Shown here: piece by piece, positions 276 to 34,671 of the stretch
How positions within the stretch are numbered: the stretch's first letter is position 1
Layout: the number at the start of each line of letters is the position of its first letter
NCBI RefSeq assembly: GCF_046119375.1
Contig: NW_027362763.1
Coordinates: 152,520,001-152,584,000, forward strand
Origin: Phyllobates terribilis
Lineage: Eukaryota
Direction of reading: 5' to 3'
DNA length: 64,000 nucleotides
Notes under the pieces: model-generated
Database searches by the model: none
What the model saw: only the letters and a program-made list of their open reading frames with translations
Told to the model about the DNA's origin: nothing
Translations under genes and position numbers: made by a program

Positions 276-3200
276 GCCTTGATCGGATCATTAAACCCTT
301 TGAGACTTCCTTGTAAGAACGACTATAAGCTGATCAAACTGATCAGCTTTGGATCTTTTGGGTGAGCTTTATTTTGCTATAATATTTATTTCCCAGGGCT
401 CCTTATGATGATGCCTATGTCTCTGTGACCTGCCCATGTAATGTTCCCATAGACAAATTATATGACTCCACATCACTGTCCACATCTATCACTATTTAGG
501 TCAGGTAGGATGTGACGTGGATGAGGAGATCATTTGAGGAGTGTTGTTTTATGTAATTTTAGACCTGGATTCCTAGTGACGCCCAACATGTTATATCGAC
601 CATTAGTACAGGAGATCACTTGATGAGGTCTATAGACTCATTGTTAGTAAGAATTCATAATAAATCTTGGATTTTCCTCCACTTCAGAGCCGTCCACTTA
701 GTGCGCCATAAAGACACAAATAAAGTATGCGCTATGAAGAAAATGGACAAGCAGAACCTGAAAGACCCAGAGGAACTGGAACGAGCCTTTCTGGAGAGGG
801 ACATCTCAATCTTTGCTGATTGTCCCTTTGTGGCCTCCATGTTCTGCTCCTTTCCTACTAAGCTTCATCTCTGTATGGTTATGGAGTATGTACCAGGTAG
901 GACACATTCATTGTATCTATATCCAGCCCACATCTGCTTAATCCTAGCACCATATATATATTCACCCTCATGATGTACAATTTACATTGTAACAAACCCT
1001 CACCTGTCATATCTGCTTTCTCCTGTAGGAGGAGACTGTGGCAAGCTTTTAAAGTACAGGGGTGCTTTACCTGTCCCCCTTGCCCGTATGTACATTGCGG
1101 AAACAATTCTTGCTGTGGAATATCTGCACAACTATGGTGTGGTGCACAGAGACCTGAAGCCTGAGAAGTAAGTGACCCCTGTAATATAATATAGGGGAAG
1201 AAAATGTAAGTTTATTACATAGTCTATGAGTTATTACTTGGGGCTGACACCATCTTCCTTTCACAGCCTCCTGATAACATCAGCAGGACATATTAAAGTC
1301 ACTGATTTTGGGCTTTCCAAACTCGGCCTCATGAGACCAACATCAGACATCTACCAGGCTCCATTTGAGGACATCACCAGCGAGTTCCTTGATAGTGAGG
1401 TCAGCTTTACTTACAGGATCTTGTACTTCACAAATCTCACCTCTTTCTCCTTTAATTTCTCATCTAGAAAATGTTTTCTATGATGTCATTTGTCGCAATT
1501 ATATTTATTGATCATCATCTCATTGTTCTGTTGGTTTCCAGGCTGTTGGCACCCCTAGATACGTAGCTCCAGAAGTCATCTTAATGAAAGGATATGGAAG
1601 ACCTGTTGACTGGTGGTCAATAGGGATCATCCTATATGAATTTCTTTATGGATTTACACCATTTAATGGAGCTTCCAAAAGGGAGATTTATCACAGTATC
1701 CTCAGGGGTAAGTAAAATCATCTGAATGCTATGTGATCTCACAGTTATTTGGTTTTCTTGATCCTGTGGTTTATTTCCCAACTTTGTTAAGAAAACTGAT
1801 GTTCATGAAAATAAATAAAGAGGTTTTATTTCTTGTAATATTTGTTTTTTATATAACAGATGACATAACTTGGACATATGATAAATACTCTCCTCCCCGC
1901 GATGCTCGGGGCATCATAACGGAGCTGCTCAGAAAAAATCCAACACATAGACTTGGGACAGGTAATATTATAATAGTATTCTTTATGACTTATTACACCT
2001 CTGTGACCAGAAAAATGATCTAGTCCATTAGGATCAGCACTGAGATTCTCTACCTACCTTCAGTACATTTCCGTTACATCTTCAGTTTAGATTAGCATAA
2101 ACTATACAGATATGGAGCAGTTTCTCTGACAATTACTGTATCACTTTCTTTCTTGTCTTCCATTTCCAGAAGGAGCAAATGAGATCAAATTTCATCAATT
2201 TCTGCGTTACTTAGACTTTGACAACCTTCTAAGTCAGAAGCCCCTGTTTGTTCCTGATCTAAAGTCAGATGAGGACACTCGCTACTTTACCAGTAAGTAA
2301 AATGAGACGTAATCTACAGGAAACTGCCGTGTGTCTTGTCATTCATTTTATGTGACAATTAGTCATAACCTGGTGACTGTACGACACTGGTCTTATACTA
2401 ATTATCTCTGATAATAATTGTATTTTGCAGCTCGCTCTAGAACATACAAACATACTGATTCAGATGAGGGCGACACAAGTGGGGACAAAGACTGGACAGA
2501 AGTCCAGAATTTTGTATCATCTTCTGAAAGATTTTCTAAAGTAAGTATGTTACAAATAAAATGTATAAGGCCATGTGCACACAGTGAGTGTTTAATGAGT
2601 TTTTTACCTCAGTATTTTTAAGCCAAAATATTAAGTGGGACAGGGAGAGGAAAAGTATAATAGAAACACGTCACCACTTCTGTATTTTTCACCCACTCCT
2701 GGTTTTGGCTTACATATACTGAGATAAAAAACTCACCAATACTCAATGTGTGCATATGGCCTAAAACCTATAATTAGAAAAAAGTTTAAAAATAAATCAA
2801 TTTTATATTTCTCCGTTCGTTTTAGCTATATCCCACCAATACTGGGATAATGAACAATGAAGAGAAGCCTATGTCATCTTCAGAGTGCTCCCCAGAGAAC
2901 AGCAAAAAAGGCTCAGACATGTGAGTAGATTATTATTATCATTATTATGAGATTCAGTTCTGATATATGTTCAGATCCAAATACAAGACACAAGTAACAT
3001 AAATCTAAATCCAGCATCCACCACCCCATGATTGCAGATCTCAGTGGATCTGGATTGTGATAACACTGCAGTAACAACTGATCAATTTGACCCACTATTC
3101 ATTTCCAGTTCACTACGAACAATATTACTAGTTAGACTCCATTCTTGCTGGTAGAATGGGGTCCTGAGCAGGATGCCCCCTTCATGGTGTCCTAATTGGC

Positions 3201-3971
3201 CTTACAGACAGCTGCTTTTCCATTTTTCTATTGTTTTTCCTTGTAATTGACTTGTCTTTCTTCTTCTAATCAGGCAGAGAGAGATTTCTTCTTCCAAAAC
3301 GGATGATGACAATCAGTGTTTTCCTGCTAAAACCAGCGAGTCATCCTCATCCTCGTCCTCAGTGTCAGGTATGTACAGATTTATAGGAAATCCTATTATA
3401 GCCTATAATGCAAAAGTGTAATGTGCATATTAGTCAGTTTACATAACTCTATATAGACACAAAGCTAATCTTTTAGAAGTTTATAATCAGCATCTGTTTC
3501 TGACTTTTTCATTAGAATCTCCTGTTCAGAAGAGAAGAAATTTTTTTCTAAAGCTGAGAAAACAAGACAAAACTGAGAAAGTAGAAGAGGGGGAACGTAG
3601 GCGAGGTAAGTGTGACAATAAGCTCCATGTTGTATGATGTCAGTGAGAAGGATTCATGTGGAGCAGATGTTATCTGTCAGTGGTGGGATTGTCACATGTA
3701 TGATGACTGACACTGATCCCGTACCTCTGTATGGAGAAGATTCCTCTCCCGTCCTCCCACAGTGACACCACAGTAGTATCCTGTAATATGGACTTCCATT
3801 ACTTACATCAGTTTTACATCTTTTCTCATAGTTTCTCTCTTCTGCCGGATGATATCATCCTGCCGGCGTGGATTGTCCCGGGCTGCTCGCGCTGTCAGAG
3901 AAAGCTACATTTTTGCATGCTGTCAACAGGGCACCATAGACATCTCAAGGACAGAAAACCCCAACATCTAG
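276..3971 (+). CDS. MAST-like AGC Ser/Thr kinase, copy A (5' partial; exons 5-16 of the copy-B model, 495 aa in window)
   Basis: Manually spliced GT-AG exons: 276-361, 688-896, 1029-1167, 1267-1399, 1542-1707, 1860-1961, 2170-2292, 2431-2540, 2826-2920, 3274-3368, 3516-3605, 3832-3971 (TAG). All phases are compatible, with no internal stop. Motifs: [71 protein letters not shown]. These match the MAST kinase domain. No specific MAST1-4 orthology assigned. Confidence 0.9.
2569..2761. mobile_element. 193-bp Tourist/Harbinger-type MITE in the intron after exon 12 of copy A
   Basis: TAA|GGCCATGTGCACAC...GTGTGCATATGGCC|TAA: terminal inverted repeats with a 3-bp TAA duplication. Same internal sequence as 26746-26939. 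Confidence 0.8.
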
Positions 3972-4116
3972 CTCCCTGAAGAACGTGCAGCACATCCTCC
4001 ATCAATGCTGTACCTGTATGGAAGGACTTGTACATCTACCTGTGGCCTTCAAGAAACATCTTCAAAAGCTGAAGGCCTCTCCATGAACATCTCTTCATCC
4101 TTTCCATCAATGCTTA

Positions 4117-4122
4117 ATTAAA
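4117..4122 (+). terminator. Candidate polyadenylation signal ATTAAA of copy A (34817-34822 in copy B)
   Basis: ATTAAA variant ~145 nt after the stop, conserved in both copies. No transcript evidence. Confidence 0.35.
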
Positions 4123-5815
4123 AAATATCTATAAATCAAAATATAAAATTGAATAATGTCCTTTTGAATCTAATTGAATAATAGTGCCATTAGTGGCATA
4201 TCAATATCATACTTGTCATAAATGTCTGATGGGTTGGACACCAAACAGGTGAAGATTGGTTCTATATCTCCCAGTAATCCTCTAAACCCCCGGCCAAGAG
4301 TGGAGGAGATGACCAGAGGTTCTGTTATTCCTAAGGGTGCGTGCACATAGCACTTTATAGACACCAGCATGCCCACTGAGGTTTTTCTATAGGAAGATGT
4401 TTCAGGAAAATGTAGACAGTGTTTTTCCTCAGTAATCTTTATTTGTAATTTTTGCAGTTGGCATCTTTTTTTGTTAACTATGTATAAAGTAGTGAGGGTC
4501 TTCTAAACAGAAGCCACCAGCAGAATGAACAAGTCACTTCCATTATCCACTTCATAAATTTTAAAGCCAAAAGTGGAAAGAAAATGTTGAAAAAGACTCA
4601 AACATACAGTATACACAGCAAATTGTTTTTACATTGAACACATGCGATCATTTAAATTTTTATTGAGTGCTTTTTATGAGGGATCCATGCGGAATCCACC
4701 AGAAGAAGAACTCAGAAGAAGAACTCAGATGCTTTTTCCTTAGTGGATCTCTATTTCAGTTCTATGCACAAGAACAAGCTGGATTCTGTGCTGCAGATTC
4801 TGGGGGTCCCAGCAGTCACACCCCACCAGAGGTGAAGCCAAGGGTTCAGCATAGGGGAGGTGACACATCTGAATGGGTCCTAACTAGGTAACCTTGTTGC
4901 AACTACGGTTGCACACCCTAACTGTGTGTATAGGGGAATCTCAGCAGATGACCGGCTGTTACTGAAAATAAATCTCTACAAAAACCAAAGCAATATTACT
5001 GCCACATGGTGACCATATAGTTGTAGATCACAGGCCTGCGGAATACATTAAAAGATTACACTACAGTTATAGATTGTGTATAGGGAATATAAGTATATAT
5101 AGATTCACTGTTCCCATCTTTTCCATCTGGCCCAGACCGATATGACAGCTTCTTCCAGACATGACTTGTCTACAAAGAACTATTTGACTTCTCAAATTTC
5201 CAGCACCGTCCCCATCTATTAATGACCTGCACAATCTCCTCACCCTGCTGATACCACAATGCTGAGCCGCTGATGCGTATGTGTTACTATACTGCACCTG
5301 CTGTGTGGTATGATAGCAGTGCTCCTGTTACTGCCCCACATACTTATGCCCACCACTGTGCCCCTTACATAGTAATAATGCCTCCTTTGTGCTATCTAGA
5401 TAGTAGAATTACCCTCTAGAAAATATTAATGCTTTGTGTAAGTGTCCAAGAAATAGTTATCACTGAAAGAAGACTTATTAAACTCAGAAATATTAAAATA
5501 TATCACTGAATTAGGTGAACTATTAAGATAAAATATAACTTTTATTTACAATATTAAAATAGTTTTTATTCAATTCCACCGTGCTATGTGAAAGTCTATC
5601 CAGCTATTAATCACCCATAGTGCCATACTGTCTGCTGGATAATAATATATGGCAATGATACCAATACTAGGTCATAGGTGCAGTGTGGATATTATACACG
5701 GCTGGTGATATTACTGCTGGCTGTATATACCACTTATTGTGCCGCTCTGTATATTATTATATCAGTCCCATCCTTATCTATGAGCAGAATATTACAGCTC
5801 ACAATTACACTGTAA

Positions 5816-8800
5816 GGCTATGTGCCCACGATGCAGAAATGCTCCGGATTTTTTTCTGAGCGTTTCTGCATCTCCCCTGGCAGAAAAAACGCATGTGGAT
5901 TGTACATGCGGATTGTACATGCAGATTGTACATGCGGATTGTACATGTGGATTGTACATGCGGATTGTATATGTGGATTGTACATGCGGATTGTACATGC
6001 GGATTGTACATGCGGATTGTATATGCGGATTGTACATGTGGATTGTACATGCGGATTGTACATGCGGATTGTACATGCGGATTGTACATGCGGATTGTAC
6101 ATGCTGATTGTATATGCGGATTGTACATGCGGATTGTACATGCGGATTGTACATGCGGATTGTATATGCGGATTGTACATGTGGATTGTACATGCGGATT
6201 GTACATGCGGATTGTACATGCGGATTGTACATGCAGATTGTACATGCGGATTGTACATGTGGATTGTACATGCGGATTGTATATGCGGATTGTACATGCG
6301 GATTGTACATGCGGATTGTACATGCGGATTGTACATGCGGATTGTATATGCGGATTGTACATGTGGATTGTACATGCGGATTGTACATGTGGATTGTACA
6401 TGCGGATTGTATATGCGGATTGTACATGCAGATTGTACATGTGGATTGTACATGCGGATTGTACATGCGGATTGTATATGCGGATTGTACATGCGGATTG
6501 TACATGTGGATTGTACATGCGGATTGTACATGTGGATTGTACATGCGGATTGTATATGCGGATTGTACATGCAGATTGTACATGTGGAATGTACATGCGG
6601 ATTGTACATGTGGATTGTACATGTGGATTGTACATGCGGATTGTACATGCGGATTGTACATACGGATTGTACATGCAGATTGTACATGTGGATTGTACAT
6701 GCGGATTGTACATGTGGATTGTATATGCGGATTGTACATGCGGATTGTACATGTGGATTGTACATGCGGATTGTACATGCGGATTGTATATGCAGATTGT
6801 ACATGCAGATTGTACATGTGGAATGTACATGCGGATTGTACATGTGGATTGTACATGTGGATTGTACATGCGGATTGTACATGCGGATTGTACATACGGA
6901 TTGTACATGCAGATTGTACATGTGGATTGTACATGCGGATTGTACATGCGGATTGTATATGCGGATTGTACATGCAGATTGTACATGTGGATTGTACATG
7001 CGGATTGTACATGCGGATTGTACATACGGATTGTACATGCAGATTGTACATGTGGATTGTACATGCGGATTGAACATGCGGATTGTATATGCGGATTGTA
7101 CATGTGGATTGTACATGTGGATTGTACATGCGGATTGTACATGTGGATTGTACATGCGGATTGTATATGCGGATTGTACATGCAGATTGTACATGTGGAA
7201 TGTACATGCGGATTTTACATGTGGATTGTACATGTGGATTGTACATGCGGATTGTACATGCGGATTGTACATACGGATTGTACATGCAGATTGTACATGT
7301 GGATTGTACATGCGGATTGTACATGTGGATTGTATATGCGGATTGTACATGCAGATTGTACATGTGGATTGTACATGCGGATTGTACATGCGGATTGTAT
7401 ATGCGGATTGTACCTGCGGATTGTACATGTGGATTGTACATGCAGATTGTACATGCAGATTGTACATGTGGATTGTATATGCGGATTGTACATGCAGATT
7501 GTACATGTGGATTGTACATGCGGATTGTACATGCGGATTGTATATGCGGATTGTACATGCAGATTGTACATGTGGATTGTACATGCGGATTGTACATGCG
7601 GATTGTACATACGGATTGTACATGCAGATTGTACATGTGGATTGTACATGCGGATTGTACATGCGGATTGTATATGCGGATTGTACATGCAGATTGTACA
7701 TGTGGATTGTACATGCGGATTGTACATGTGGATTGTACATGCGGATTGTATATGCGGATTGTACATGCAGATTGTACATGTGGAATGTACATGCGGATTG
7801 TACATGTGGATTGTACATGTGGATTGTACATGCGGATTGTACATGCGGATTGTACATACGGATTGTACATGCAGATTGTACATGTGGATTGTACATGCGG
7901 ATTGTACATGTGGATTGTATATGCGGATTGTACATGCAGATTGTACATGTGGATTGTACATGCGGATTGTACATGCGGATTGTACATGCGGATTGTACAT
8001 GTGGATTGTACATGCAGATTGTACATGCGGATTGTACATGTGGATTGTACATGCGGATTGTACATGCGGATTGTACATACGGATTGTACATGCAGATTGT
8101 ACATGTGGATTGTACATGCGGATTGTACATGTGGATTGTATATGCGGATTGTACATGCAGATTGTACATGTGGATTGTACATGCGGATTGTACATGCGGA
8201 TTGTATATGCGGATTGTACATGCAGATTGTACATGTGGATTGTACATGCGGATTGTACATGCGGATTGTACATACGGATTGTACATGCAGATTGTACATG
8301 TGGATTGTACATGTGGATTGTACATGCGGATTGTACATGCGGATTGTATATGCGGATTGTACATGCAGATTGTACATGTGGATTGTACATGCGGATTGTA
8401 CATGTGGATTGTACATGCGGATTGTATATGCGGATTGTACATGCAGATTGTACATGTGGAATGTACATGCGGATTGTACATGTGGATTGTACATGTGGAT
8501 TGTACATGCGGATTGTACATGCGGATTGTACATACGGATTGTACATGCAGATTGTACATGTGGATTGTACATGCGGATTGTACATGTGGATTGTATATGC
8601 GGATTGTACATGCAGATTGTACATGTGGATTGTACATGCGGATTGTACATGCGGATTGTATATGCGGATTGTACATGCGGATTGTATATGCGGATTGTAC
8701 ATGCGGATTGTACATGTGGATTGTACATGCAGATTGTACATGCAGATTGTACATGTGGATTGTACATGCGGATTGTACATGCGGATTGTACATACGGATT

Positions 8801-10297
8801 GTACATGCAGATTGTACATGTGGATTGTACATGCGGATTGTACATGTGGATTGTATATGCGGATTGTACATGCAGATTGTACATGTGGATTGTACATGCG
8901 GATTGTACATGCGGATTGTATATGCGGATTGTACATGCAGATTGTACATGTGGATTGTACATGCAGATTGTACATGTGGATTGTACATGCGGATTGTACA
9001 TGCGGATTGTACATACGGATTGTACATGCAGATTGTACATGCAGATTGTACATGTGGATTGTACATGCGGATTGTACATGTGGATTGTATATGCGGATTG
9101 TACATGCAGATTGTACATGTGGATTGTACATGCGGATTGTACATGCGGATTGTATATGCGGATTGTACATGCAGATTGTACATGTGGATTGTACATGCGG
9201 ATTGTACATGCGGATTGTACATACGGATTGTACATGCAGATTGTACATGTGGATTGTACATGCGGATTGTACATGCGGATTGTATATGCGGATTGTACAT
9301 GCAGATTGTACATGTGGATTGTACATGCGGATTGTACATGTGGATTGTACATGCGGATTGTATATGCGGATTGTACATGCGGATTGTACATACGGATTGT
9401 ACATGTGGATTGTACATGCAGATTGTACATGTGGATTGTACATGCGGATTGTACATGTGGATTGTACATGTGGATTGTATATGCGGATTGTACATGCAGA
9501 TTGTACATGTGGATTGTACATGCGGATTGTACATGCGGATTGTACATGCGGATTGTACATGTGGATTGTATATGCGGATTGTACATGCAGATTGTACATG
9601 TGGATTGTACATGTGGATTGTACATGTGGATTGTACATGCGGATTGTACATGCGGATTGTACATACGGATTGTACATGCAGATTGTACATGTGGATTGTA
9701 CATGCGGATTGTACATGTGGATTGTATATGCGGATTGTACATGCAGATTGTACATGTGGATTGTACATGCGGATTGTACATGCGGATTGTATATGTGGAT
9801 TGTACATGCGGATTGTACATGTGGATTGTACATGCAGATTGTACATGCAGATTGTACATGTGGATTGTACATGCGGATTGTACATGCGGATTGTACATAC
9901 GGATTGTACATGCAGATTGTACATGTGGATTGTACATGCGGATTGTACATGCGGATTGTACATGCGGGTTGACAAGCGTTTTCCAAGCGATTTTAGCATC
10001 ACTTGGAAAGTGCTTGTCAGCTTGGTCACACTATATAAATCTATGCAAACAGCGTAATCCATGCTTTCCAATGCAAGTCAATGACGGCGAAAACACAGCG
10101 CTTCCGCAAGATAATTAGTAGTGTTGCTTTTTTTTCCGCAATGATTATCCGCAGCGGAAATTTCCGCAGAATGTCCACAGCACATGTGGATTATCATTGG
10201 GGACATGGCAGGCCTTCTACCATGCGTTTTTTAAGCGTTTCTGCGGCATTTTTGCTGCTGTGGAAACGCTTAAAAAGCGCATCGTGGGCACACAGCC
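5816..10297. mobile_element. Harbinger/Tourist-type MITE, unit A, inflated by an internal satellite
   Basis: TIRs GGCTATGTGCCCACGATGC (5816) and GCATCGTGGGCACACAGCC (10279-10297), one mismatch. The paralog at 36516-37389 is 874 bp; lengths reconcile exactly (874-91+4069-58-312=4482). Confidence 0.8.
5896..9964. repeat. 13-bp tandem satellite (consensus CGGATTGTACATG), 313 units
   Basis: 4069 bp = 313 x 13. Variant units TGG/CAG for CGG, TAT for TAC, CATACGG, GGAATGTA. Explains the >1300-aa artefactual ORFs on both strands. Confidence 0.98.
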
Positions 10298-12539
10298 TCT
10301 GTGAGGATTCATGGTGTCAGTGGAAATCTTCCATGGGTGGAGACAAAGTTGCAACTATCAAGTCCAGGTTGTCTGAGGGAGGATGAATATATTGTGTCTA
10401 TTTCTCTCTCTCCCCCTGATCTGCCTGGATATATGAATCCTCCATCCTCTGTACAGCACCAGCATTACTGCATTATAGAAAGGTCTCCCAATAAGATATC
10501 TACTGAAATAAGGAGTCTGCCTGCCTCTGTATAACTCCTCTAACTACTTGCTGGATTACAATATCACAATTATAAACCCAGGCAGAGATAAAGGGCGTCC
10601 TTATATGCCCCAATAAGATTTGTGTCCAGGTTTACCAGGTCTTAATATCCTCTAGTGGTATTTTGCCTTTAAATATAACCCAGTATTAAAGTGCATTGGA
10701 GTATAACGTTCCTCCAGTACAGTAATAGTGCGTATTAGGTCACAATGCGTTTCGTCCACTCTAAGTTTGCAAATAGCGCCCCCGCTCAATGATGGCTGGT
10801 CCTGGTGTCCCCTAGTAGGGCCTATCCAACTCAGACCACCACCAACCAGAACCAGTCAATACTTAAAAACCAATCAACAGAGCATGTCGTTGACCTATTA
10901 TCCTCAAGAAGATTTAAGACATTAACAGTTAATCAAGTCAGGATAAATCCAGTAGATCAGTACTTGTGATGGAGTAATTATAGATACACAGTGTTAAATA
11001 TACATTACTCACAAAAAGTTAGGGATATTTGATTTTCGGGCAAAATTTATGTAAAATGTAAAAAGTTCACGCTACAGTGATATTTTATCATGAAAGTAGG
11101 GCATTTAAGTAGAAGCGTACAGGGGCCCCAAAGGAGAGGGGGCCCGATCAGCTGCTGCAATGTCTGGTTGTCACATAGAGCCAGCGGCAACATCTCCACT
11201 AAGAGGAGAGGAAGAGGCCCGTACCTGATTCATTTCCGGTCACACAGGGACCTGCACTCCGCAAAATATGTCAGAATGGGCCCTTTTCTCTCCTCTTAGT
11301 TGGTGCTGCTGGTTCTATGCTGCAGGAGCTCGAGATTCCTGGACACGCCCCATGGACTCGCCTGGCCTATTAGCATTCAGGCACAGGCAGGAGGAAGCAG
11401 GCCTGGTAAGTATGGCTGCTGTTCTCAGCCAATCCTGTCTCCTGCTTCTTCACTGCCTCTGACTGCAGCTCTGAACAGCCTCCAAGCAGTCAGTACACCT
11501 GATAACTCTCCTTCCTTCTGAGCAGTTCTTATAACTGATCTGCCTGATCAATGTTCTCATGAGCTATTACATTAATCCCCCATGCCCTCCTGAGGGGGCT
11601 TTACTGGACAACTGCTGCACTGGCCCATTCACAAGCAGTAGCTGCAGTGTGAATGCTGCCTGAGTGGCTCAGTTCCCCAATAAATCCCACTTAGTACAGG
11701 GGGTGGTAAGTGGCTGCAGGAGGGAGAGGAGGTTGATGTGATGGCCGATGGTACTATGGGTCAGTTGCTCAGAACTTCTCAGGAGGCTAGTGTCAGATTT
11801 ACTAACTGCATGGATGTATTGAGGAGACAGGACTGGCTGACAGCTGGAGATCTGGCCAGTAGTGCTGATGGAGGACAGAAGACCAACGGGAAGGAGCTGC
11901 CGAAGATGGGAGAATGCACCTGCCAGAGGGACATCATATGTAAGTATGTGTACTGTATGTACCTGTGTAGTGTTTATATGTATCTCTGTGCACTGATGTA
12001 CTGAGATTATCTGTGTATGTACAGTATGTGTGTATTCACACAGATAACCACAGTACAATATACTGTATATATGGTAGTATCTGAGTGTACAGTAGTTATC
12101 TATGTGTATATATATCTGTAGACAGTATGCGTAAAGGTAAATATCACTTTACCCCAGGTTTCCTGGGAGCAGACAAATTACCAGTGCAGCTGCATCGAGG
12201 TGGAGGGTGGCCCACTGACACCAGCAAATATTTCAGCTATGTGTGTATCCTCGGACGTGCATTCCCCTGAAACATATTGCAATGCAGGGGATCCACCCGC
12301 TCCCTGCACTGCAGTCCAATTTGCAGCCAGCTGCTGACCTCGGCATGCCCATGACTGGTGGCAATGACGTCATGCATGATCATGGGGACACCGAAGTCAG
12401 CTGGCGGCTCCGGTTCCTGGTCAGCTTGGTCGCCATAAAAGGAGGGAGGCCCAAACACATTTCTTGCACAGGGGCCCCAAGCTGTCTGTGTCCACAGGGG
12501 CTTCTCACTGTAACATTCACAAAGTATTCAGCAGTTCTG

Positions 12540-13342
12540 TATTGACTAGACGCACCTGCCCACACTGTAACACCACCATCACCACCACTTGTCTGGTGAC
12601 AACAGTGGCTGATGCAGAGCGCTCTCCTTGACATCTCCAACATTGTTGGCAGCAATCATATAAGCTCAGCGTGAATCGACTTTCATCAGTGAACAGCACT
12701 GAGGCCCACTGGTCTCACGTCCAGCATAAATGCTCACTGGCACTTGATAGTGTGGTCAGGTACACTTGCAGGTCATCTAGCACGCAGATCACACTGATGT
12801 AAACAGTTTCGAGAGTCTAACGTGACACTTGGATGCCTCTCACCTTCTTTAAATGTGTTGTGTGGCATTCATCATTCGGTTCCAAAGAGCATTGTTCACA
12901 ATGAAACCGTCATCAATGTGGGATGTGGCCAAAGGACGTCCACTTCTCTGCCTTTCTGTAACTCTTTCAGTCTCTCTGTATCTCTATTGCAACCTGCTGA
13001 TGACACTCTTTGATGCTCTAAGCTCAGTGGCCACTGTGAACATCCTGCTTGAAGCCTCGCAATGGCAAAGTACTGTTGATCAATTGTTAGGTGTTGTCTT
13101 GGTCTCATAATGTCAAAATGTGAACAGCACGATGAGGAGGACAATTTAAATACCAATCCTAATTGAACCCCCAAAATATATTGGCCGATTCATGAATCAA
13201 ACACCTGTTGTGAATTTTACCAATAAGATCCATGTTAGAGAATAGCAAGTTGTGCAAAAAGTCCTGAAACATTGAACAGTTGGACATGTGCATTCAAAAG
13301 TTTAGAGAAGGTCACATTAAGTTCACCTGAAAAGGTTAGAGT
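12540..13342 (-). mobile_element. Degenerate Tc1/mariner transposase fragment, unit A
   Basis: Minus-strand LFTDESRFTL...QQCWRCQGER, typical of the first catalytic D region of Tc1 transposases. Interrupted at 13343 by a hAT end. Confidence 0.7.
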
Positions 13343-21210: not shown

Positions 21211-21749
21211 TTTCCTCCTAATTTTAGTCAGCTTTTGCTTTTCAATGCATAGGCGAACACTAAGGGAGACCCACTACCCAATAATGGGTAGAAGGTTTTT
21301 AGTACGCTGTAATCCACATCTGTTTCAAGCGGCATTGCAGTTCCTCATAATTTTTGGAAAGCCTTCCATTCACTGCTTAGGCCAACAGTGCACAGGAGAC
21401 CCAGTTGCTATAAATGGAAAAAATGGTTTAGTTAAGGCCCTCTGACCTCCATGTCACTTCCAAGGGGCATTGGAGTGCCTCTAAATTTTTGGTAGGCATT
21501 GCACTCACTGTATGCCCTATAACTGTGTAGCCGAACCGCTCCTTTTGGTACAGAAACATATCCTACAAGACATGTGTGGTTGACTGGCCTGATATTGATG
21601 TGAATGGTCCCTGTTCCTCCTGCTCTTTCTCCTTTGCCACCACCTCATTCATCATTTATCACCTGAAGCTTTGTTTTTACGGGAGTCATAGAACTGGGAT
21701 AGTAGCAGGAAAACATCCAGCAATCCTCGGAGGAGGTAGGATATGCGCT

Positions 21750-22620
21750 AAAACGCTGACCACCTCAGGCCTAGCCGCTACTACATACATGCGCTTGCAT
21801 TCCAAGAAAACAAAGCAGATGCTAACTTCTATCATCATCATCATGTTCCTCACCTTGGCACTCTCAACTCCCCTGATGGAGAATCCAGGGCCCACAAGAG
21901 GAGTCTGGTTCTCTGGTGGGCTCGTCCAATGCTGCCCTAAAGCAGGCCAGGCTTAGAAAAGTGTGTGGGAAGGTGACAGAAGAAATAGGGGCGGCTGGGT
22001 ACCGTTTATCGACACCCGGCCGCCGGGCGGCTGGGGACTGAGTATGGATACCAGGCCGCCGAAGCAGCCATGAGGTAGTGGCCAGCTTCGGCCTCCTCCA
22101 AACTAAAAGGCCCCATTTCAAGTGCCAACTAGCAGTATGGCATTGCAGCCTGGGGGTGGGTGGGTGGCAAGCTACACACTTACGCTTGCATTAAAAGAAA
22201 ACAAAGCAGATGCTAACTTCTATCATCATCATCATGCTCCTCACCTTGGCACTCTCAACTCCCCTGATGGAGAAGCCAGGGCCCACCGGAGGAGTCTGAT
22301 TCTCTGGTGGGCTCGTCCAATGCTGCCCTAAAGCAGGACAGGCTAAGAAAAGTGTGGGGGAAGGTGACAGGAGAAATAGCGGCGGCTGGGGACCGGGCGT
22401 GGACACCCGGCCGCGGGGCAGATGGGGACAGAGTATGGACACCAGGCCGCCCCCTGGCGGCTGGGGACCGATTATGGACACCCGGCCGCCGGGCGGCTGG
22501 GGACTGAGTATGGATACCTCGCTGCCGAAGCAGCAATGAGGTAGTGGCCAGCTTCGGCTTCCTCCAAACTAAAATACCCCATTTCAAGTGAAAACTAGCA
22601 GTATGGTATTGCAGCCTGCG
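21750..22620. repeat. Internal duplication with GC-rich ~30-bp repeats (GGACACCCGGCCGCC...GGCGGCTGGGGAC) in the hAT 3' region; paralog ~56330-57200
   Basis: Two copies of the CTAACTTCTATCATCATCATCAT...AGAAATAG block, each followed by a variable number of GC-rich units. Confidence 0.8.
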
Positions 22621-23319
22621 GGTGGGTGGGTGGTTGGCTGCATATTTGCACTTGCATTGCAAGGAATGGGGGAGGTACAATTGAACACTGCCCTGGGACA
22701 AGGACTTGCACGGGGATAGTTACAAGTCTGCATCTTCTGATGCGGCAAGGATGACTTCTGATGGGCACACTTTTAGGCAGTGACCTGGGAGTCAGAGATG
22801 CTCCCAGGGGTCTTCCCCATGCTGTTTCCATGTCTTTTCAGCACTGTATGCATGTGTCACACAGCACATGGCCAGATAAGGTTGTAAAATGTTAAAATTA
22901 CATTTCCCAGTGAATGCATTTGTCACGGTTGAAACCAATACAAAAGTGCAAAAACACAAGAAAAATGCTACTTGTGAACATAGTTCAAGGTGTGGAATAG
23001 TATTTTTGTTTTTGGTTATTTATTTTACCTTATACACAAGTCTTTACCCTGGAAAGAAAGTTCCTGAACATATTTCACAGGAAAACCGTTTCAGTTTCGT
23101 TTTTGAACGTTTTATTGTGAGCCCGTAAAAGTGGCTTAATACCTCTGACCACGTTGTTGACAGCAGTGACCTGGGGGTCAGAAATGCTCCCTGGGGCAAT
23201 CCCCATGTCATTTTAACACTGTCACTATGGTGTGGGCACTTTTTAGGCTTTCTACAGACTGAAGGGGGTGCCGCCGCAAAAATGCTCGGGTCTCCCATAG
23301 ACTAACATTAGGCTCGTTG

Positions 23320-23576
23320 AAACCATTTCCGGTGACTACCTCTTGAAGCTCATCAAGAGAATGCCAAGAGTGTGCAAAGCAGTCATCAAAGCAAAAGGTG
23401 GCTACTTTAAAGAACCTAGAATATATGACATAGTTTCACACTTTGTTGTTAAGTATATAATTCCACATGTGTTAATTCATAGTTTTGATGCCTTCAGTGT
23501 GAATGTACAGTTTTAAAGTCATGAAAAGACAGAAAAATCTTTAAATGAGGTGTGTCCAAACTTTTGGTCTGTACTG
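23320..23576 (+). mobile_element. Tc1-like transposon 3' end, unit A (58400-58687 in unit B)
   Basis: Transposase C-terminal coding remnant, then GGTGTGTCCAAACTTTTGGTCTGTACTG|TA: a Tc1-type terminal repeat followed by a TA target. Confidence 0.8.
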
Positions 23577-24205
23577 TATATTATGAACACTTGCTACCTC
23601 ATGTTATTGTAATGCCTTATATTCCTCTGTAATTTGGCTGAAATGTAATGTGTCTGATACATTCTATTTGTTTAATATAATTATTAAAACTTATAAAGCG
23701 TCTTTCATTTTTTTCACAAACTGTATAAAGTGCATACTTTTAATACTTGGAAGTAGTTATAACTCGGCCATATATATAATATGCCCGACCAATTTCATTT
23801 GAATGTAAAATTGGAGAATCACACTGCCATATCATATTGTGAATCACATCACCGTATAATATGGATCAATTAATTGTGATAGTAACACACCAAATTTGAT
23901 AGTGTCATACATAATATGTCACTATCAAATCAAATTTATTGTGCAGTACAACAACATGTTAATAATAATCGGGCAATTCGTTGATAGTAACATTATCAAA
24001 TCAATGAATCAAAATTAAATGATTTGATAATGCACCCTATCAATTTTAATTGATACACTAATATAACACTATGAATTTCATTAGGGCATAGGGACGGGGT
24101 CGCGCTCTGCAAAAAAGGGGAGGGATTAGACAGTTTGATACACTTTGATAGGGGCGGGGCACCTGTCAGATTTAGTTTGATGGATTATATGAATTCTATA
24201 CTACT
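23577..24205. repeat. Right arm of the foldback-like element, unit A
   Basis: Inverted copy of 14314-14940; followed by CCTGAC versus CCCGAC before the left arm. Confidence 0.9.
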
Positions 24206-25420
24206 CCTGACATTCCTGTCCCAATAACTAGGGGACCACAGCACACCACTATTGATCCCAGATAAGTGTTAAAAGGTTGTTGGTTGGATAGTCAATAATG
24301 CTTCCAGTCAATTTGCCACCACCACCCTTTCTTCCACACGGTCAAATATCAGTAGCCGTGAGTCTGGGCCGCATATTCCTCACCCTGATCCGTCTTCCTC
24401 CCACCGTGCCTGGAGACAACTGATCCCACACTTTGATACTGCGAAGAGCTGTTCACTTTTCCGCTTCAAGCGGGGCAGGAGGAGATCGCATGTAGCGATG
24501 CTCAAATATTTGAGCAGCCACGGTCACACAAATGCATCGGTGGGAAAGTGCAATTACTGTCACAAGAGGTGGATGATGATGAGACACAATTGCCAGAAAG
24601 TCAAGAGGAGGACCAGGGTGCGGTAGTGGAAGACGAGGTGGTGAGCGATGAAGTCTCTGACCCAACCAGGCAAGGTGACATGCAGAGCGAGGAGAGCAGC
24701 ACACAGGGGGAGGGAGGCATAGCACCACAACAGGCAGGAACAAGCTATGTGGTGGCCACAGACACAAGGCAGGCAACCGTTCCCCGAAACACCAACACGA
24801 AGGAAGTTGCCAGTACAACTGTTAGGTCTTTCCGAGTCTGGTTGTTTTTTAATAGACTGTTTAGATACCCCAAAAAGGCCATTTGCAACATCTGCCAGGC
24901 CAGTATCAGCAGGGTTAGCAAAACTAGCAGCCTGACCACCACCAGCATGCTCAGGCACATGACAGCAAAGCAACCGACTAGGTGGGCAAAATCCCAGAGT
25001 CAAGAAATAGTGTCTGCGGGTGACATCACTTCTTGTTCCTCTGTTGTGTGTGCAAGCCAATCCCCTGTCCATTGCGAATGCGAAGATGCTGCCCACCCTG
25101 CACCTGTCATTGCACACTCGCAACTAGCACCATCAGCAATCACGTCGCAGCGCAGCGTTCAGTTGTCCCTACCCCAGTCCTTGGAATGCGAGCGCAAATA
25201 TGCAACCAACGCCCCACTGGCCACACCACTAAACTCTCACATTTTGTGAATGCTTTCTCTCAAAATGTTGCCTTTTAGGCTCATGGAGATGGAAGCTTTC
25301 TGGCAGCGGCCGTCCCTCTGTACTTCGTCCCCAGCCACCACTATTTCTCCTGGTGTGCCATCCCTGCATTACACAAGCACATGTCCCAGAACATTAGCCG
25401 TGCCCTCAACAACGCAGTTA
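24206..25420 (+). pseudogene. Older hAT transposase fragment, unit A (59316-60551 plus 61790-61820 in unit B)
   Basis: VWLFFNRLFRYPKKAICNICQAS...MLRHMTAKQP BED finger; paralogous to but distinct from the younger hAT. Truncated before the catalytic core. Confidence 0.8.
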
Positions 25421-26745
25421 CTGATATATACTCCCCCAACCTGGCATATGCGCCCCCATCATGATATATGCTCCCCCATCCTAGTATATGCTATTGGGAA
25501 TAGAACATTTTGGTTTTCTCCAATGGTCGGCAGGGTCATATTTGTAATAGAGATCCCCATCTTTGGAAGTGGGTGTGGGAGAGCAGCATGGGTCTGTGCT
25601 TCATATGCCAGGGCTAGATGCAGTCCCAGTCTAACCCTGTTCTCACGGTAAAAATGCTTCTTTTATCACCAAAATCTGAATTTCTTATTATTACATAGTT
25701 ACATAGGTTAAAAAAAGACTCGTATTCATCAAGTTCTGCCTTTCTCCACCAATTTACATTCTTTGTCACTAAATTATCTATATCCCACAATGCCATTGCT
25801 GCTGAAGAAGTCATCCAGCCCTTGTATAAAAGCTGTTATAGTGTCGACCATTACTACTTCTTGTGGTCGGCATTCCACAGTCTGACTGCTCTTACTGTAA
25901 AGAACCCTTTCCTGTTTAGCCGCCAGAATCGCCTTTCTTCCACCTGTAATGAGTGCCTCCTGGTCCTTAGTATGGGTTCTAGAAGCAATAAGTCATGTGC
26001 TAGTCCCCTGTATTGACCACACATGGATTTATGCATATAAATGATATCTCTTCTGAGACGTCTTTTTTCTAAGTTAAACAAGGCCAACTTTTCCAACCTC
26101 TCATCATATGAGAGGCCTTCCATCCCTTTTAACAATCTAATTCTCCACCTTTGAAATGACTCTAACTTCTGAATATTATTTTTAAAATATAGAGTAAAAA
26201 TCTGGATCCCATATTCTAGATGTGGCCTCACCAGTGATTTATAAAGGGGTAACAAAACGTTGGTATCGCAGGATTTTTTCTCTCTTTTTAAATACCATAA
26301 AATCTAGTTTGCTTTTGCGGCTGCTGCTTGACCTTGAGTACTGCTGCTCAGCTTACTTGTAACCAGAACACCCAAGTCCTTCTCCTGTTCTGTAGTCCTG
26401 AGTATACTCCCATTTAATGTGTATGCAGCAATAGGATTACTCCGTTCTAGGTGCATTACTCTACATTTATCTACATTAAATCTCATTTGCCAAGTGTTTA
26501 CCCATTCAGTCATCTTATCAAGATCATTCTGTAATATTGTAATGTCAAGATCAGTTTTTAATATCCTACATAGTTTGGTGTTGTCAGCAAAAACTGACAC
26601 TTTACTCTCAATCCCATCTCCAAGGTCATTAATCAAAAAACTAAAAAGAATCGGTCCTAGGACAGATCCCTGCAGTCCACCTTGCTGACTATGTCCCATT
26701 TAGAAAAAGTACCATTTACAAAGACTCTTCGTTTCCTGTCTTTTA

Positions 26746-29060: not shown

Positions 29061-32000
29061 ATGTCTGGAATTCCTCCAGACAGACTTCAGGTGTTAGCAC
29101 TACTCCAGGGCATTCTTACCACCTATGACCCTGACTTTGTGCTACCACTACCCGATGGCGTCCTCAGCTTCACTTACCGGCTGGTTATGGAGCAAGTGAG
29201 AGATTGCCTGACCAAATACCACCAAGGTCGAATAAGCTCAGAATATCTTGAGTATTTACAGCAGAACATCTGGACATTAGTACAGCAGGTAAGTAGCAGA
29301 CAATCTGCACAAGTCATAGAAAAATAATAATAATAATAGACAATATTAATGAAATACAAGTTTAAGTTTATCCTGTACCAAATACCCAGATAAGAATACC
29401 CGGGAGCTGTAATAGGGTGTACAGGCTACATTACTTGCCGTGCAGATACTTACTAGTATTTGCTGTACAAATGGCAGGAGTAACATGTTTGGTGATATAA
29501 ATGGCCTCCTCCATTCTGCACGTTCTCTCAAGATTTTCCTTTCTTTTTTATTCTCATTTCTATAGGCTGAAGAAAAATCCCAAAGTGGAGAATTGGCCTT
29601 TATAAAACAACTGGCGCTAAATGTCCTGCTTGTACTGGAGTATCCGGCCTACTCACTAGAGCGTCTGGTAAGGATCCACCGTCTTCTATATCTCATGTCC
29701 TTGTTGTCTGATCTTCTCCAGATTACCGTCATATAGCAGAAGGTCAGATGTGTGATGTTAGAGGCCTCCCTGTCCGCTACAGGCAGACACAGGACCTTTT
29801 ATGGCCGCCTGTCTCTGCTGCTCCATCACCTGTGATGGCAGTCTGTACTCAGCGGTGCAGAGTTTGTATTTCCACCTCTGTCTCGCTCGATCATCACAAT
29901 CTTCCTTCTGGTAAATGCTGCAGTCCTGATAGAAGATATTAGAGAACAGTGGTAGATACAAGTCCCTTATATATGAATGTGGATTTACTGGAGGGAGCGG
30001 CTGTGTATAGTCCGTCTGTTATATTACTTGTATATATTATATCCATCAGGAAACATCAGAAGGCGACTCCGAAGAGGGGCAAAACCTAAATATTGCTGAC
30101 CCTGAGACCAGTCAGCCGGGGCTAAACTCTGATCTGATGGAAGGTAAGCCGATCATCTAATATTCTACATTCTAATATCAAGTTATAGAGAACGGCAGAG
30201 AATATGGAGATTTACTCTTCATCCTCTGTATGTGGCCGCTGACGGCTCATGAGCCCCCTATAGACTATAATGGAGGGGCTCATGTAATTCTGCTCCTCTT
30301 CTCTGGGCTCTTTTCATGTCATTGTTGTGACTGGATCAGATCCTGAGCAATCACACATTTATAGTACAGTATATATAGATATGCCATAATTATATACAGT
30401 GTGTAGAATATCCATATACCCACTATTATTCCATGTACAGGGGTCTCGTGATTTCCTTCATTACATGGATGTGTTATATAGTAAGTGCTGATATAGACTA
30501 ATACATGACGTCTCTTCATTATTTTATCATTATTTCAGGAATAACTGAGCCGGAAGATTCTGATGGTGGAATATGTGAGACACCAGAGATCATCCAGGAA
30601 TCTGCCAGTGTAAGTATCAGAGGGACGTCTGTAGATTATCAGATGACGGGTGTGAGTTACACATCCCATATTATACCCCATATGATAATGGGATAGCGCG
30701 GTTCTTCATGTTGATCAGACCTATTGTATGTGATGATAGCATTATTATTATTCTGCCTCCTGATGTCCCTTATGTTCCCCTGCAGTACAATGATATAAGT
30801 GTATGGGGGATATCCCCCTATAATATAATAGTGTCTGTGGAGGGTCCGGCTTGTATCACATCCTCTACTTCTGCTGCAGTGTAATCAGTGAGGACACCAT
30901 ATAGAAGTGAGACCTTCCTGCATCTGGGGCTTTCATTCTCTTGCAGATTCAATGTCTTATTGTCATTTCTTTTTCCTTTTTAGGCCTTGATCGGATCATT
31001 AAACCCTTTGAGACTTCCGTGTAAGAACGACTATAAGCTGATCAAGCTGATCAGCTTTGGATCTTTTGGGTGAGCTTTATTTTGCTTTAATATTTATTTC
31101 CCATGGCTCCTTATGACAATGCCTATGTCTCTGTGACCTGCCCATGTAATATTCCCATAGACAAATTATATGAGTCCACAACACTGTCCACATCTGTCAC
31201 TATTCAGGTCAGGTAGGATGTGACGTGGATGAGGATCCCCCATTGGTGATCATTTATGGAGCGTTATTTTATGTAAATTTAGACCTGGACTTCTAGTGAC
31301 GCCCAACATGTTATATCGACCATTAGTACAGGAGATCACTTGATGAGGTCTATAGACTCATTGTTAGTAAGAATTCATAATAAATCTTGGATTTTCCTCC
31401 TCTCCAGGGCCGTCCACTTAGTGCGCCATAAAGACACAAAACAAGTATGCGCTATGAAGAAAATGGACAAGCAGAACCTGAAAGACCCAGAGGAACTGGA
31501 ACGAGCCTTTCTGGAGAGGGACATCTCAATCTTTGCTGATTGTCCCTTTGTGGCCTCCATGTTCTGCTCCTTTCCTACTAAGCTTCATCTCTGTATGGTT
31601 ATGGAGTATGTACCAGGTAGGACACATTCATTGTATCTATATCCAGCCCACGTCAGCTTAATCCTAGCACCTTATATATATTCACCCTCATGATGTGTAA
31701 TTTACATTGTAACAAACGCTCACCTGTCAAATCTGCTTTCTCCTGTAGGAGGAGACTGTCGCAAGCTTTTAAAGTACAGGGGTGCTTTACCTGTCCCCCT
31801 GGCCCGTATGTATATTGCGGAAACAATTCTTGCTGTCGAATATCTGCACAACTATGGTGTGGTGCACAGAGACCTGAAGCCTGAGAAGTAAGTGACCCCT
31901 GTAATATAATACAGGGGAAGAAAGTTTGAGTTTATTACATAGTCTATGAGTTATTACTTGGGGCTGACACCATCTTTTTTTCACAGCCTCCTGATAACAT

Positions 32001-34671
32001 CAACAGGACATATTAAAGTTACTGATTTTGGGCTTTCCAAACTCGGCCTCATGAGACCAACATCAGACATCTACCAGGCTGCATTTGAGGACATCACCAG
32101 CGAGTTCCTTGATAGTGAGGTCAGCTTTACTTACAGGATCTTGTACTTCACAAATCCCACCTCTTTCTCCTTCTCTGATAATTTCTCATCTAGAAAATGT
32201 TTTCTATGATGTCATTTGTCGCAATTATATTTATTGATCATCATCTCATTGTTCTGTTGGTTTCCAGGCTGTTGGCACCCCTATATACGTAGCTCCAGAA
32301 GTCATCTTAATGAAAGGATATGGAAGGCCTGTTGACTGGTGGTCAATAGGGATCATCCTATATGAATTTCTTTATGGATTTACACCATTTAACGGAGCTT
32401 CCAAAAGGGAGATTTATCACAGTATCCTCAGGGGTAAGTAAAATCATCTGAATGCTATGTGATCTCACAGTTATTTGGTTTTCTTGATTCTGTGGTTTAG
32501 TTCCCAACTTTGTTACGAAAACTGATATTTATGAAAATAAATAAAGAGGTTTTATTTCTTGTAATATTTGTTTTTTATATAACAGATGATATAACTTGGA
32601 CGTTTGATAAATACTCTCCTCGGGGCATCATAACTGAACTGCTCAGAAAAAATCCAACACAAAGACTTGGGACAGGTAATATTATAATAGTAATCTTTAT
32701 GACTTATTACACCTCTGTGACCAGAAAAATGATCTAGTCCATTAGGATCAGTACTGAGATTCTCTACCTACCTTCAATACATTTCCGTTACATCTTCAGT
32801 TTAGATTAGCATAAACTATACAGATATGGAGCAGTTTCTCTGACAATTACTGTATCACTTTCTTTCTTGTCTTCCATTTCCAGAAGGAGCAAATGAGATC
32901 AAATTTCATCAATTTCTGCGTTACTTAGACTTTGACAACCTTCTAAGTCAGAAGCCCCTGTTTGTTCCTGATCTAAAGTCAGATGAGGACACTCGCTACT
33001 TTACCAGTAAGTAAAATGAGACATCATCTACAGGAAACTGCCGTGTGTCTTGTCTTTCATTTTATAAGACAATTAGTCATAACCTCGTGACTGGTCTTAT
33101 ACTAATTATCTCTGATAATAATTGTATTTTGCAGCTCGCTCTAGAACATACAAACATACTGATTCAGATGAGGGCGACACAAGTGGGGACAATGACTGGA
33201 CAGAAGTCCAGAATTTTGTATCATCTTCTGAAAGATTTTCTAAAGTAAGTATGTCACGAATAAAATGTATAAGGCCATGTGCACATAATGAGTGTTTGAT
33301 GAGTTTTTTACCTCAGTATTTGTAAGCCAAAATATTAAGTGGGACAGGGAAAGGAAAAGTATAATAGAAACACGTCACCACTTCTGTATTTTTCACCCAC
33401 TCCTGGTTTTGGCTTACATATACTGAGATAAAAAACTCACCAATACTCAATGTGTGCATATGGCCTAAAACCGATAATTAGAAAAAAGTTTAAAAATACA
33501 TCTATTTTATATTTCTCCGTTCATTTTAGCTATATCCCACCAATACCGGGATAATGAACAATGAAGAAAAGCCTATGTCATCTTCAGAGTGTTCCCCAGA
33601 GAACAGCAAAAAAGGCTCAGACATGTAAGTAGATTATTATCATTATTATGAGATTCAGTTCTGATATATGTCAGATCCAAATACAAGACCCAAGTAACAT
33701 AAATCTAAATCCAGCATCCACCACCCCATGATTGCTGATCTCTGTGGATCTAGATTGTGATAACACTGCAGTAACAACTGATCAATGTGACCCACTATTC
33801 ATTTCGAGATCACTACGGCCAATATTACTAGTTAGACTCCATTCTTGCTGGTAGAATGGGGTCCTGAGCAGGGTGTCCCCATCATGGTGTCCTAATTGGC
33901 CTTACAGACAGCTGTTCTTCCATTTTTCTATTGCTTTTCCTTGTAATTTACTTGTCTTTCTTCTTCTAATCAGGCAGAGAGAGATTTCTTCATCCAAAAC
34001 TGATGATGACAATCAGTGTTTTCCTGCTAAATCCAGCGAGTCATCCTCATCCTCGTCCTCAGTGTCAGGTATGTACAGATTTATAGGAAATCCTATTATA
34101 GTCTATAATGTAAAAGTTTTTTGTGCATATTAATCAGTTTACATAACTCTATATAGACACAAAGCTAATCTTTTAGAAGTTTATAATCAACATTTGTTTT
34201 TGACTTTTTCATTAGAATCTCCTGTTCAGAAGAGAAGAACATTTTTTCTAAAGCTGAGAAAACAAGACAAAACTGAGAAAGTAGAAGAGGGGGAACGTAG
34301 GCGAGGTAAGTGTGACAATAAGCTCCATGTTGTATAATGTCAGCGAGAAGGATTCATGTGGAGCAGATGTTATCTGTCAGTGGTGGGATTGTCACATGTA
34401 TGATGGCTGACACTGATCCCGTACCTCTGTATGGAGAAGATTCCTCTCCCGTACTCCCACAGTGACACCACAGTAGTATCCTGTAATATGGACTTCCATT
34501 ACTTACATCAGTTTTACATCTTTTCTCATAGGTTCTCTCTTCCGCCGGATGATATCATCCTGCCGGCGTGGATTGTCCAGGGCTGCTCGCGCTGTCAGAG
34601 AAAGCTATATTTTTGCCTGCTGTCAACAGGGCACCATAGACATCTCAAGGACAGAAAAACCCCATATCTAG
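29061..34671 (+). CDS. MAST-like AGC Ser/Thr kinase, copy B (16 exons, 656 aa, PDZ-less)
   Basis: Exons: 29061-29288, 29566-29667, 30050-30143, 30539-30609, 30984-31069, 31408-31616, 31749-31887, 31987-32119, 32268-32433, 32586-32675, 32884-33006, 33135-33244, 33530-33624, 33974-34068, 34216-34305, 34532-34671. Total 1971 nt = 656 aa + TAG. Exons 1-2 ([14 protein letters not shown]...VRDCL...GRISSEY...ELAFIKQL) resemble the C-terminal part of the MAST N-terminal DUF1908 region. The ATG at 29061 is the simplest start; acceptor-like AGs at 29079 and 29090 leave room for an alternative first exon. Confidence 0.88.
33273..33465. mobile_element. Orthologous 193-bp MITE in copy B intron
   Basis: Same TIRs, TAA TSD and position as in copy A, so the insertion predates the duplication. 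Confidence 0.8.

Follow-up and report, generated by a model that had tools for sequence, protein, structure and literature searches.

A 64-kb window of the genome of the frog Phyllobates terribilis (contig NW_027362763.1, positions 152,520,001 to 152,584,000; coordinates below count from the first nucleotide of this stretch) carries two copies, A and B, of a gene for a short MAST-like kinase that lacks a PDZ domain. We put a probability of roughly 75% on the reading that the two copies are neighbouring members of a frog-specific family, here called mini-MASTs, that arose from duplication of MAST4 DNA, was amplified in tandem, kept the catalytic module and lost the PDZ domain. The usual picture of MAST kinases is one of four genes per vertebrate, each large, slow to evolve and equipped with a PDZ domain; how they are regulated is poorly understood.

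Two intact genes in tandem repeat units

Both copies lie on the forward strand, about 30.7 kb apart, in head-to-tail repeat units. Self-BLAST aligns unit A collinearly with unit B (30714-64000), the identity ranging from 85 to 97%. The block that bears the gene, 1-5988, matches 30714-36688 at 96.3% identity, and the window comprises one full repeat unit and most of a second. A motif scan likewise placed HRDLKP, DFGLS, APE and AMKK each twice on the forward strand with the same spacing.

Using the annotated homologues P0002 and P0008 as tblastn guides and a scan of all GT/AG pairs, copy B was modelled as 16 exons separated by 15 GT-AG introns, with an open frame of 1,971 nt encoding 656 aa over a span of 5,611 bp (ATG at 29061, stop at 34669-34671; Table 1). 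Searching with the translated exon 1 retrieved short annotated proteins that share the start Met, and the closest relative of copy B is a 654-aa protein of Ranitomeya variabilis (P0181, 78% identity). A retrocopy origin is ruled out, as all 15 introns are present. Coordinates for copy A were transferred from copy B via a MAFFT alignment. Its exons 5-16 fall within the window (276-3971, stop at 3969-3971) while exons 1-4 lie upstream of it, and in these twelve exons no splice site has been lost and the reading frame continues uninterrupted as far as the stop. In total, 22 of 22 internal splice sites are kept in copy A and 30 of 30 in copy B. Both copies encode AMKK with the β3 Lys, LERD with the αC Glu, HRDLKPEN (its Asn encoded across the exon 7/8 junction), DFG and APE. 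A preliminary description of this stretch, made from the letters alone, had proposed two same-strand copies about 30.7 kb apart that splice without stops and keep these residues, with 5.6 kb and 656 aa for copy B; our independent rebuild arrived at identical figures and bears out each of these points.

The two copies are intact and have been under purifying selection since their duplication. Over 492 shared codons, the Nei-Gojobori counts are 22.5 synonymous (Sd) and 15.5 non-synonymous (Nd) differences, giving a dS of 0.072, a dN of 0.0136 and an omega (dN/dS) of 0.19. An omega of 1 is rejected at p ~1-2e-6 (Fisher and binomial tests), and an omega of 0.5, as expected with one copy drifting freely, at p 0.005. 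An earlier hand count of about 21 synonymous versus 17 non-synonymous changes, with dN/dS near 0.3, had pointed the same way; the accompanying estimate that introns are 5-6% apart in a sampled stretch was somewhat high, the overall value being 4.0% (1.7-6.2% per 300-bp window). Of 87 alignment columns with a conservation of 95% or more across 88 annotated relatives, each copy departs from only one (S298N), and one is also the family median.

These figures bear on the possibility that A and B are young, unused duplicates in which disabling mutations have not yet accumulated. The exon divergence of about 2.6% leaves little time for decay, the surroundings are rich in transposons and satellites, copy B has a private loss of four amino acids, and neither copy was found among annotated proteins, all of which would fit disuse. 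Given the low omega, the rejection of the one-copy-neutral case, the complete sets of splice sites and the single departure per copy, however, such disuse is unlikely.

Several other observations weigh against our reading of A and B as mini-MAST family members. Divergence between the copies is uneven, dS (7.2%) exceeding that of the introns (4.0%), which in turn exceeds that of the 3' flank (1.5%). This hints at gene conversion or an uneven history, and since gene conversion may be involved we treat omega as approximate. Exon 10 is 12 bp longer in copy A, as copy B has lost PRDA in frame, residues that copy A and every relative examined retain. Copies A and B were not among the annotated proteins recovered by similarity searches (no exact look-up was made), although a 78%-identical query should have recovered both; the locus may lack an annotation or have been classed as a pseudogene. 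The T-loop motif discussed below reads EDITSE in both copies, while most relatives have R at its fifth position. The transcript evidence comes from the homologue of another frog rather than from copies A and B or P. terribilis, and the family counts are of annotated models, from which copies that NCBI called pseudogenes are left out. Finally, what the C-terminal motif does and which substrate is phosphorylated are both inferred, and the C-terminal helix in the model of P0181 (residues 608-632) is of low confidence, with a predicted local distance difference test (pLDDT) score of ~55-59.

Architecture of the mini-MAST protein

The copy B protein consists of four parts, namely a DUF1908 four-helix core, an AGC kinase domain, an AGC tail and a basic, Cys-rich C-terminal motif. 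On the retention of DUF1908 the preliminary description was silent; exon 1 matches Pfam PF08926 above the gathering score (E 1.2e-9, positions 141-212 of 281) and the MAST1 DUF1908 structure, PDB 2m9x, with an E value of 4e-14. Only the C-terminal helical core of DUF1908 is present, the N-terminal half having been lost. Landmarks of the kinase domain are the FGSFG Gly loop, K211 (AMKK), E230 (LERD), HRDLKPEN at 303-310, DFG at 323-325 and APE at 363-365.

The activation loop is 43 residues long in both copies, in 86 of 89 relatives and in 25 of 25 canonical MASTs. Hallmarks of the MAST activation loop are an insertion of ~15 residues, the absence of a phosphosite at APE-9 and a K(DFG+3)-D(APE-11) pair (PMC12732324). 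Copy B has K328, D352 and E354, the first two being the Lys at DFG+3 and the Asp at APE-11. Across the family, the Lys is found in 80 of 89 proteins and the Asp in 85 of 89, with no Ser or Thr at APE-9. The T-loop motif is EKDARE in canonical MASTs, a stretch that contacts DUF1908 in a model of Mast2 (PMC12732324), and EDI[TS]RE in the frog family, where the Ile is nearly invariant. The AGC tail of canonical MASTs has a hydrophobic motif, IxxFS, and a hydrophobic-like motif, FxKV[YF]SS (PMC12732324). The tail encoded in the window reads VQNFV and RFSKLY-PT, with NF[VT]SSSxR[LF]SKL[YC] as the family consensus; relative to canonical tails, the F and SK positions are retained while the Ser of the hydrophobic motif and the SS pair are not.

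Exon 16 encodes the C-terminal motif, which recurs in one RNA-derived homologue and, of 120 annotated family models, in 72. The conserved C-terminal module as a whole combines a Cys cluster with a basic site of the RRxS type and a predicted helix of basic character. In canonical MASTs the motif has no significant counterpart. A derivation from their post-PDZ KKRSSLFRKI stretch, the best match in three canonical alignments, was considered and set aside, as the similarity covers 11-12 residues and is not significant (E 0.1-0.3); it is a lead only.

As a proxy for the structure we used an AlphaFold2 model of P0181 based on a 60-sequence family alignment. It predicts a four-helix bundle at residues 6-105 (helices 6-21, 33-54, 60-80 and 85-105), a disordered acidic linker and a confident AGC kinase fold; confidence in the tail falls past residue ~480, and a disordered Ser/Glu/Lys-rich stretch follows. 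By Foldseek, the kinase of this model aligns to Akt1 with a TM score of 0.88. A PDB search with the N-lobe exon matched ROCK and NDR kinases and listed no MAST1-4 kinase chain. As the kinase domain structures of MAST1-4 are unsolved (PMC12732324), these matches are no argument against membership in the MAST group.

Compared with canonical MASTs, the frog proteins have a rewritten P+1 loop and a rewritten DUF-contacting T-loop motif, and one might suppose that they are pseudokinases, or scaffolds that do not transfer phosphate. Pseudokinases usually lack at least one catalytic residue, however, and all are kept in 88-89 of 89 family members and in both copies, making this reading extremely improbable.

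Loss of the PDZ domain

No PDZ sequence was detected anywhere in the window by tblastn with frog MAST4 (P0005), newt MAST2 and fish MAST1 at E <= 1. A PDZ exon spliced in place of exon 16 had been envisaged as a way in which the gene model could be misleading, and these searches found none downstream. The match of the window to P0005 (2,347 aa) is confined to aa 343-836, from the DUF core to the AGC tail. Consistent with PDZ loss, PF00595 and PF17820 are listed on no frog mini protein but on most canonical MASTs long enough to hold a PDZ, the latter drawn from birds, reptiles, mammals, fish and lamprey. Copy B and annotated homologues have the C-terminal exon and its stop codon in common.

A frog-specific multicopy family

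Based on three database searches clustered at 90% identity and tallied from the best-120 lists, so that all counts are lower bounds, at least 120 PDZ-less clusters exist in seven frog species. The proteins range from ~370 to 1,100 aa and mostly have 500-800 aa. Ranitomeya variabilis has at least 43 clusters, on at least five chromosomes, followed by Ranitomeya imitator and Anomaloglossus baeobatrachus with at least 25 each, P. terribilis with at least 12 (one with 47 member sequences), Dendrobates tinctorius with at least 10, Engystomops pustulosus with at least 4 and Rhinoderma darwinii with at least 1. Toad, tree frog, Xenopus and Rana proteins did not appear in the best-120 lists, which is not proof of their absence.

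We gauged constraint on the family from catalytic-site conservation and from transcript pairs. In 88-89 of the 89 members the β3 Lys, αC Glu, HRD, Asn, DFG and APE are retained, and with DWW, RLG and the catalytic-loop Lys included the range is 86-89 of 89. Elsewhere the proteins have diverged widely, the median pairwise identity being 55% in the family versus 82% in canonical MASTs from fish to mammals. The most variable kinase blocks are 211-230, 271-280, 341-360 (the T-loop insertion and P+1 loop) and 391-420 (αF-αG), in which canonical MASTs hardly vary. Differences between copies A and B include the P+1 residue (R/I), a T-loop insertion residue (P/A) and an indel at 421/422, just downstream of block 391-420.

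The database names of these proteins are MAST4-like, 3-like, 1-like and 2-like, RefSeq using MAST4-like. In the published literature on MAST kinases in frogs and on poison-frog genomes we found no description of the family; it is present in databases by annotation, with no describing paper found. The preliminary description had considered the genes under-described, which seems fair, and had proposed a lineage-specific, multicopy, PDZ-less kinase family under purifying selection. Dozens of homologues in seven species, near-invariant catalytic residues, the missing PDZ and spliced homologues all agree with that proposal, and disabled copies do not abound among the annotated models.

One protein that groups with the mini-MASTs, P0163 of D. 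tinctorius (1099 aa), carries the annotation ribosomal protein S6 kinase 2 alpha-like. In a search with P0181 it reached a total of 1510 bits, near the self-score, its best local alignment having 72% identity over 81% of the query. Two kinase domains, from two tandem copies fused in one gene model, would fit these values.

Homologous transcripts in another frog

Seven RNA-seq runs (SRR5149371 to SRR5149511) yielded Logan contigs, 1.7-3.0 kb long, with open reading frames (ORFs) of 520-581 aa that are 53% identical to copy B. These ORFs are gapless across junctions 5/6 to 15/16 of the copy B model and end in the same C-terminal motif. Homologue mRNAs of another frog are therefore transcribed and spliced, and the spliced transcripts whose absence would have spoken against the family were found in the form of these intronless contigs. 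Omega among the RNA-derived ORFs is 0.29-0.38.

Contig L002 carries a DUF1908 frame (548-853) and a kinase frame (1268-2830) as separate ORFs ~400 nt apart, which may reflect a retained intron or an alternative 5' end. Contigs L001 and L007 encode a different N-terminus, MENQKKYK...

Probable origin from MAST4

Phylogenies were built from 115 rows (quick) and 44 rows (careful), in both cases without an outgroup. In both trees canonical MAST1-4 form one tight group, from which the short frog proteins lie apart at the end of a long stem (0.43-0.49 changes per site). A split between {minis + tetrapod MAST4} and {MAST1-3} has support of 100/99, and attachment of the minis beside frog MAST4 98/92. 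Forcing MAST4 to be monophyletic without the minis costs 6.7 log-likelihood units (approximately unbiased test, p 0.046). Derivation of the mini-MASTs from MAST4 within amphibians is thus the best-supported scenario, to be taken with caution given the long stem and the lack of an outgroup. As introns are retained, the duplication took place at the DNA level.

MAST4, represented by P0005 of A. baeobatrachus (2347 aa), is the nearest canonical relative of the minis both in the trees and in the exon-1 search. The two share the DUF1908 core, the AGC kinase domain with its 43-residue loop and K(DFG+3)/D(APE-11), and the AGC tail. The minis, in contrast, cover only the part of MAST4 defined by the tblastn match, without the N-terminal half of DUF1908, the PDZ and the long tail, and have a new C-terminal motif; MAST4 is single copy while the minis exist in dozens of copies and evolve much faster. 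Under this scenario, the mini-MASTs have shed the PDZ, the long disordered tail and the N-terminal half of DUF1908 and have gained the conserved C-terminal module, with amplification in tandem arrays probably strongest in poison frogs and their relatives. In the tree, Engystomops proteins nest among dendrobatoid lineages, and the Rhinoderma protein pairs with the RNA-derived protein of another frog, apart from the Engystomops and dendrobatoid members. Several lineages therefore look older than poison frogs, with tandem bursts later.

Predicted activity and possible roles

In vitro catalysis by Mast2 requires a DUF1908 helical bundle in cis and an AGC kinase with a self-stabilised 43-residue activation loop, while the PDZ is dispensable and Ser mutations in the AGC tail lower activity (PMC12732324). 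A Mast2 ΔPDZ construct (residues 294-867) has full in vitro activity, which removal of DUF1908 abolishes (PMC12732324). The mini-MASTs have the same combination of DUF1908 bundle, AGC kinase with 43-residue loop and AGC tail. However, the construct is a laboratory truncation of a mammalian protein without the frog C-terminal motif, while the minis are natural genes known by sequence. As the frog proteins keep the active module of Mast2, we infer that they are active kinases, which like Mast2 would need no T-loop phosphorylation.

Mast2 phosphorylates ENSA at S67, the site used by MASTL, and MAST3 acts likewise on ARPP-16 (PMC12732324). ENSA/ARPP19-type proteins are accordingly the first candidate substrates, and the mini-MASTs probably act on this class, as do MAST2, MAST3 and MASTL. 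MASTL (Greatwall), which shares this substrate class with MAST2/3 (PMC12732324), is also a MAST-lineage AGC kinase without a PDZ. Unlike the minis, with their DUF1908 and 43-residue loop, it has no DUF1908 and carries an activation-loop insertion of ~500 residues (PMC12732324). In the frog proteins, the C-terminal module might serve targeting or regulation in place of PDZ scaffolding; its Cys cluster is possibly acylated, which would allow membrane anchoring, and the RRxS site would be suited to control by a PKA-like basophilic kinase.

The catalytic core is frozen while, within the kinase domain, the P+1 loop, T-loop insertion, αD region and αF-αG, which are substrate-facing and regulatory surfaces, change fastest. 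The mini-MASTs could thus form an arsenal of kinases that diversifies rapidly under genetic conflict, be it germline drive or a conflict with pathogens or transposons; we regard this as tentative and rather doubtful. More specifically, as the preliminary description speculated with a testis or meiotic-drive role, the family might work in the germline, for example as a transmission distorter or in meiosis. Tandem amplification, fast evolution and the conserved catalytic core are compatible with that idea, as is phosphorylation of ENSA/ARPP19, an M-phase entry switch, by MAST-lineage kinases (PMC12732324), and MAST2 duplications have been linked to human azoospermia, as cited in a review (PMC12024977). 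Since amplified kinase families arise for somatic reasons too, a germline role is speculation and quite unlikely. The resemblance to mouse Smok, which that description named as its precedent, is one of copy number only, both being multicopy kinase gene families; the AGC/MAST classification (Pfam, PDB, Foldseek and tree), and not a direct comparison with Smok, sets the minis apart.

The mini-MASTs amount to a natural gene family built from DUF1908, kinase and tail, a module that according to recent biochemistry suffices for activity in vitro, joined to a new C-terminal module and present as dozens of fast-evolving copies in one frog group. If active, they would form a natural set of variants in which to study how the activation loop co-operates with DUF1908. 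They would also make it possible to test whether the control of PP2A by the MAST lineage via ENSA/ARPP19 has diversified, and would serve as a case of how kinase genes multiply in giant, transposon-rich genomes. Should genetic conflict lie behind the amplification, they would be among the few such kinase examples in vertebrates.

The repeat units and other features of the window

Each repeat unit consists of the gene and a spacer of about 25 kb made up of satellites and transposon remnants. The units differ in a 13-bp satellite (unit CATGCGGATTGTA), which extends over 4.1 kb in unit A (5892-9978, ~314 units) but only ~0.3 kb in unit B (36592-36929), the array having grown or shrunk since the units were duplicated. 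A block of ~5 kb (37531-42553) and another of ~2.5 kb (60556-63089) occur in unit B only. Also confined to unit B is a retrotransposon at ~45.2-49.7 kb, with three long open frames on the forward strand (45221-48580) for a Ty3/gypsy-like pol with reverse transcriptase, RNase H and integrase; its absence from unit A places its insertion after the A/B duplication.

Very large, repeat-rich frog genomes are error-prone in assembly, and the high identity over 26 kb might suggest that a single locus is represented twice, its two haplotypes having been put in tandem by the assembler as A and B. This is very improbable. The window has no N runs, and so no gap separates the units, their divergence of 3-8% is well above the level expected for two haplotypes, and they differ in the satellite, in both unit-specific blocks and in the retrotransposon. 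Related species, furthermore, have many paralogues on the same chromosomes.

Table 1. Coordinates of the copy A and copy B genes, their encoded parts and associated features in the 64-kb window.
Feature	Position	Strand	Basis or remark
Repeat unit A	1..26392		Alignable to unit B; unit-specific insertions (self-BLAST)
Copy A exons 5-10	276-361, 688-896, 1029-1167, 1267-1399, 1542-1707, 1860-1961	+	
Copy A exons 11-16	2170-2292, 2431-2540, 2826-2920, 3274-3368, 3516-3605, 3832-3971	+	
Copy B complete coding region	29061..34671	+	tblastn with P0002 and P0008, splice-site scan
Copy B exons 1-8	29061-29288, 29566-29667, 30050-30143, 30539-30609, 30984-31069, 31408-31616, 31749-31887, 31987-32119	+	
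Copy B exons 9-16	32268-32433, 32586-32675, 32884-33006, 33135-33244, 33530-33624, 33974-34068, 34216-34305, 34532-34671	+	
DUF1908 core and start codon, copy B exons 1-2	29061..29667	+	~aa 1-105; Pfam and PDB 2m9x match
AGC kinase domain, copy B exons 5-11	30984..33006	+	~aa 181-455; Pfam Pkinase matches per exon
AGC C-terminal tail, copy B end of exon 11 and exon 12	33006..33244	+	VQNF, then RFSKLY; aligned to canonical MAST tails
C-terminal motif and stop codon, copy B exon 16	34532..34671	+	Family-specific motif, then CC pair
First forward-strand AATAAA after stop	35667..35672 (copy B); 4967-4972 (copy A)	+	~1 kb past each stop; consensus match, candidate poly(A) signal

At the family threshold, Rfam reported nothing anywhere in the window, and a search for ENE-like 3' repeats found no repeated unit 3' of copy B (34672-36600). 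The spacers of both units contain remnants of hAT-type transposases, with zf-BED and hAT dimerisation domains, at 17509-18711, 24548-25249 and 54125-54685. A 35-bp satellite of ~22 units lies at the matching place in unit A (15932-16680) and unit B (50301-51046), with 85-90% identity between units. In unit A, inverted arms of ~627 bp (14315-14941 and 23577-24204, 95% identity) flank ~8.6 kb; one such arm is also present in unit B (58688-59309), an arrangement that fits a foldback-like element.

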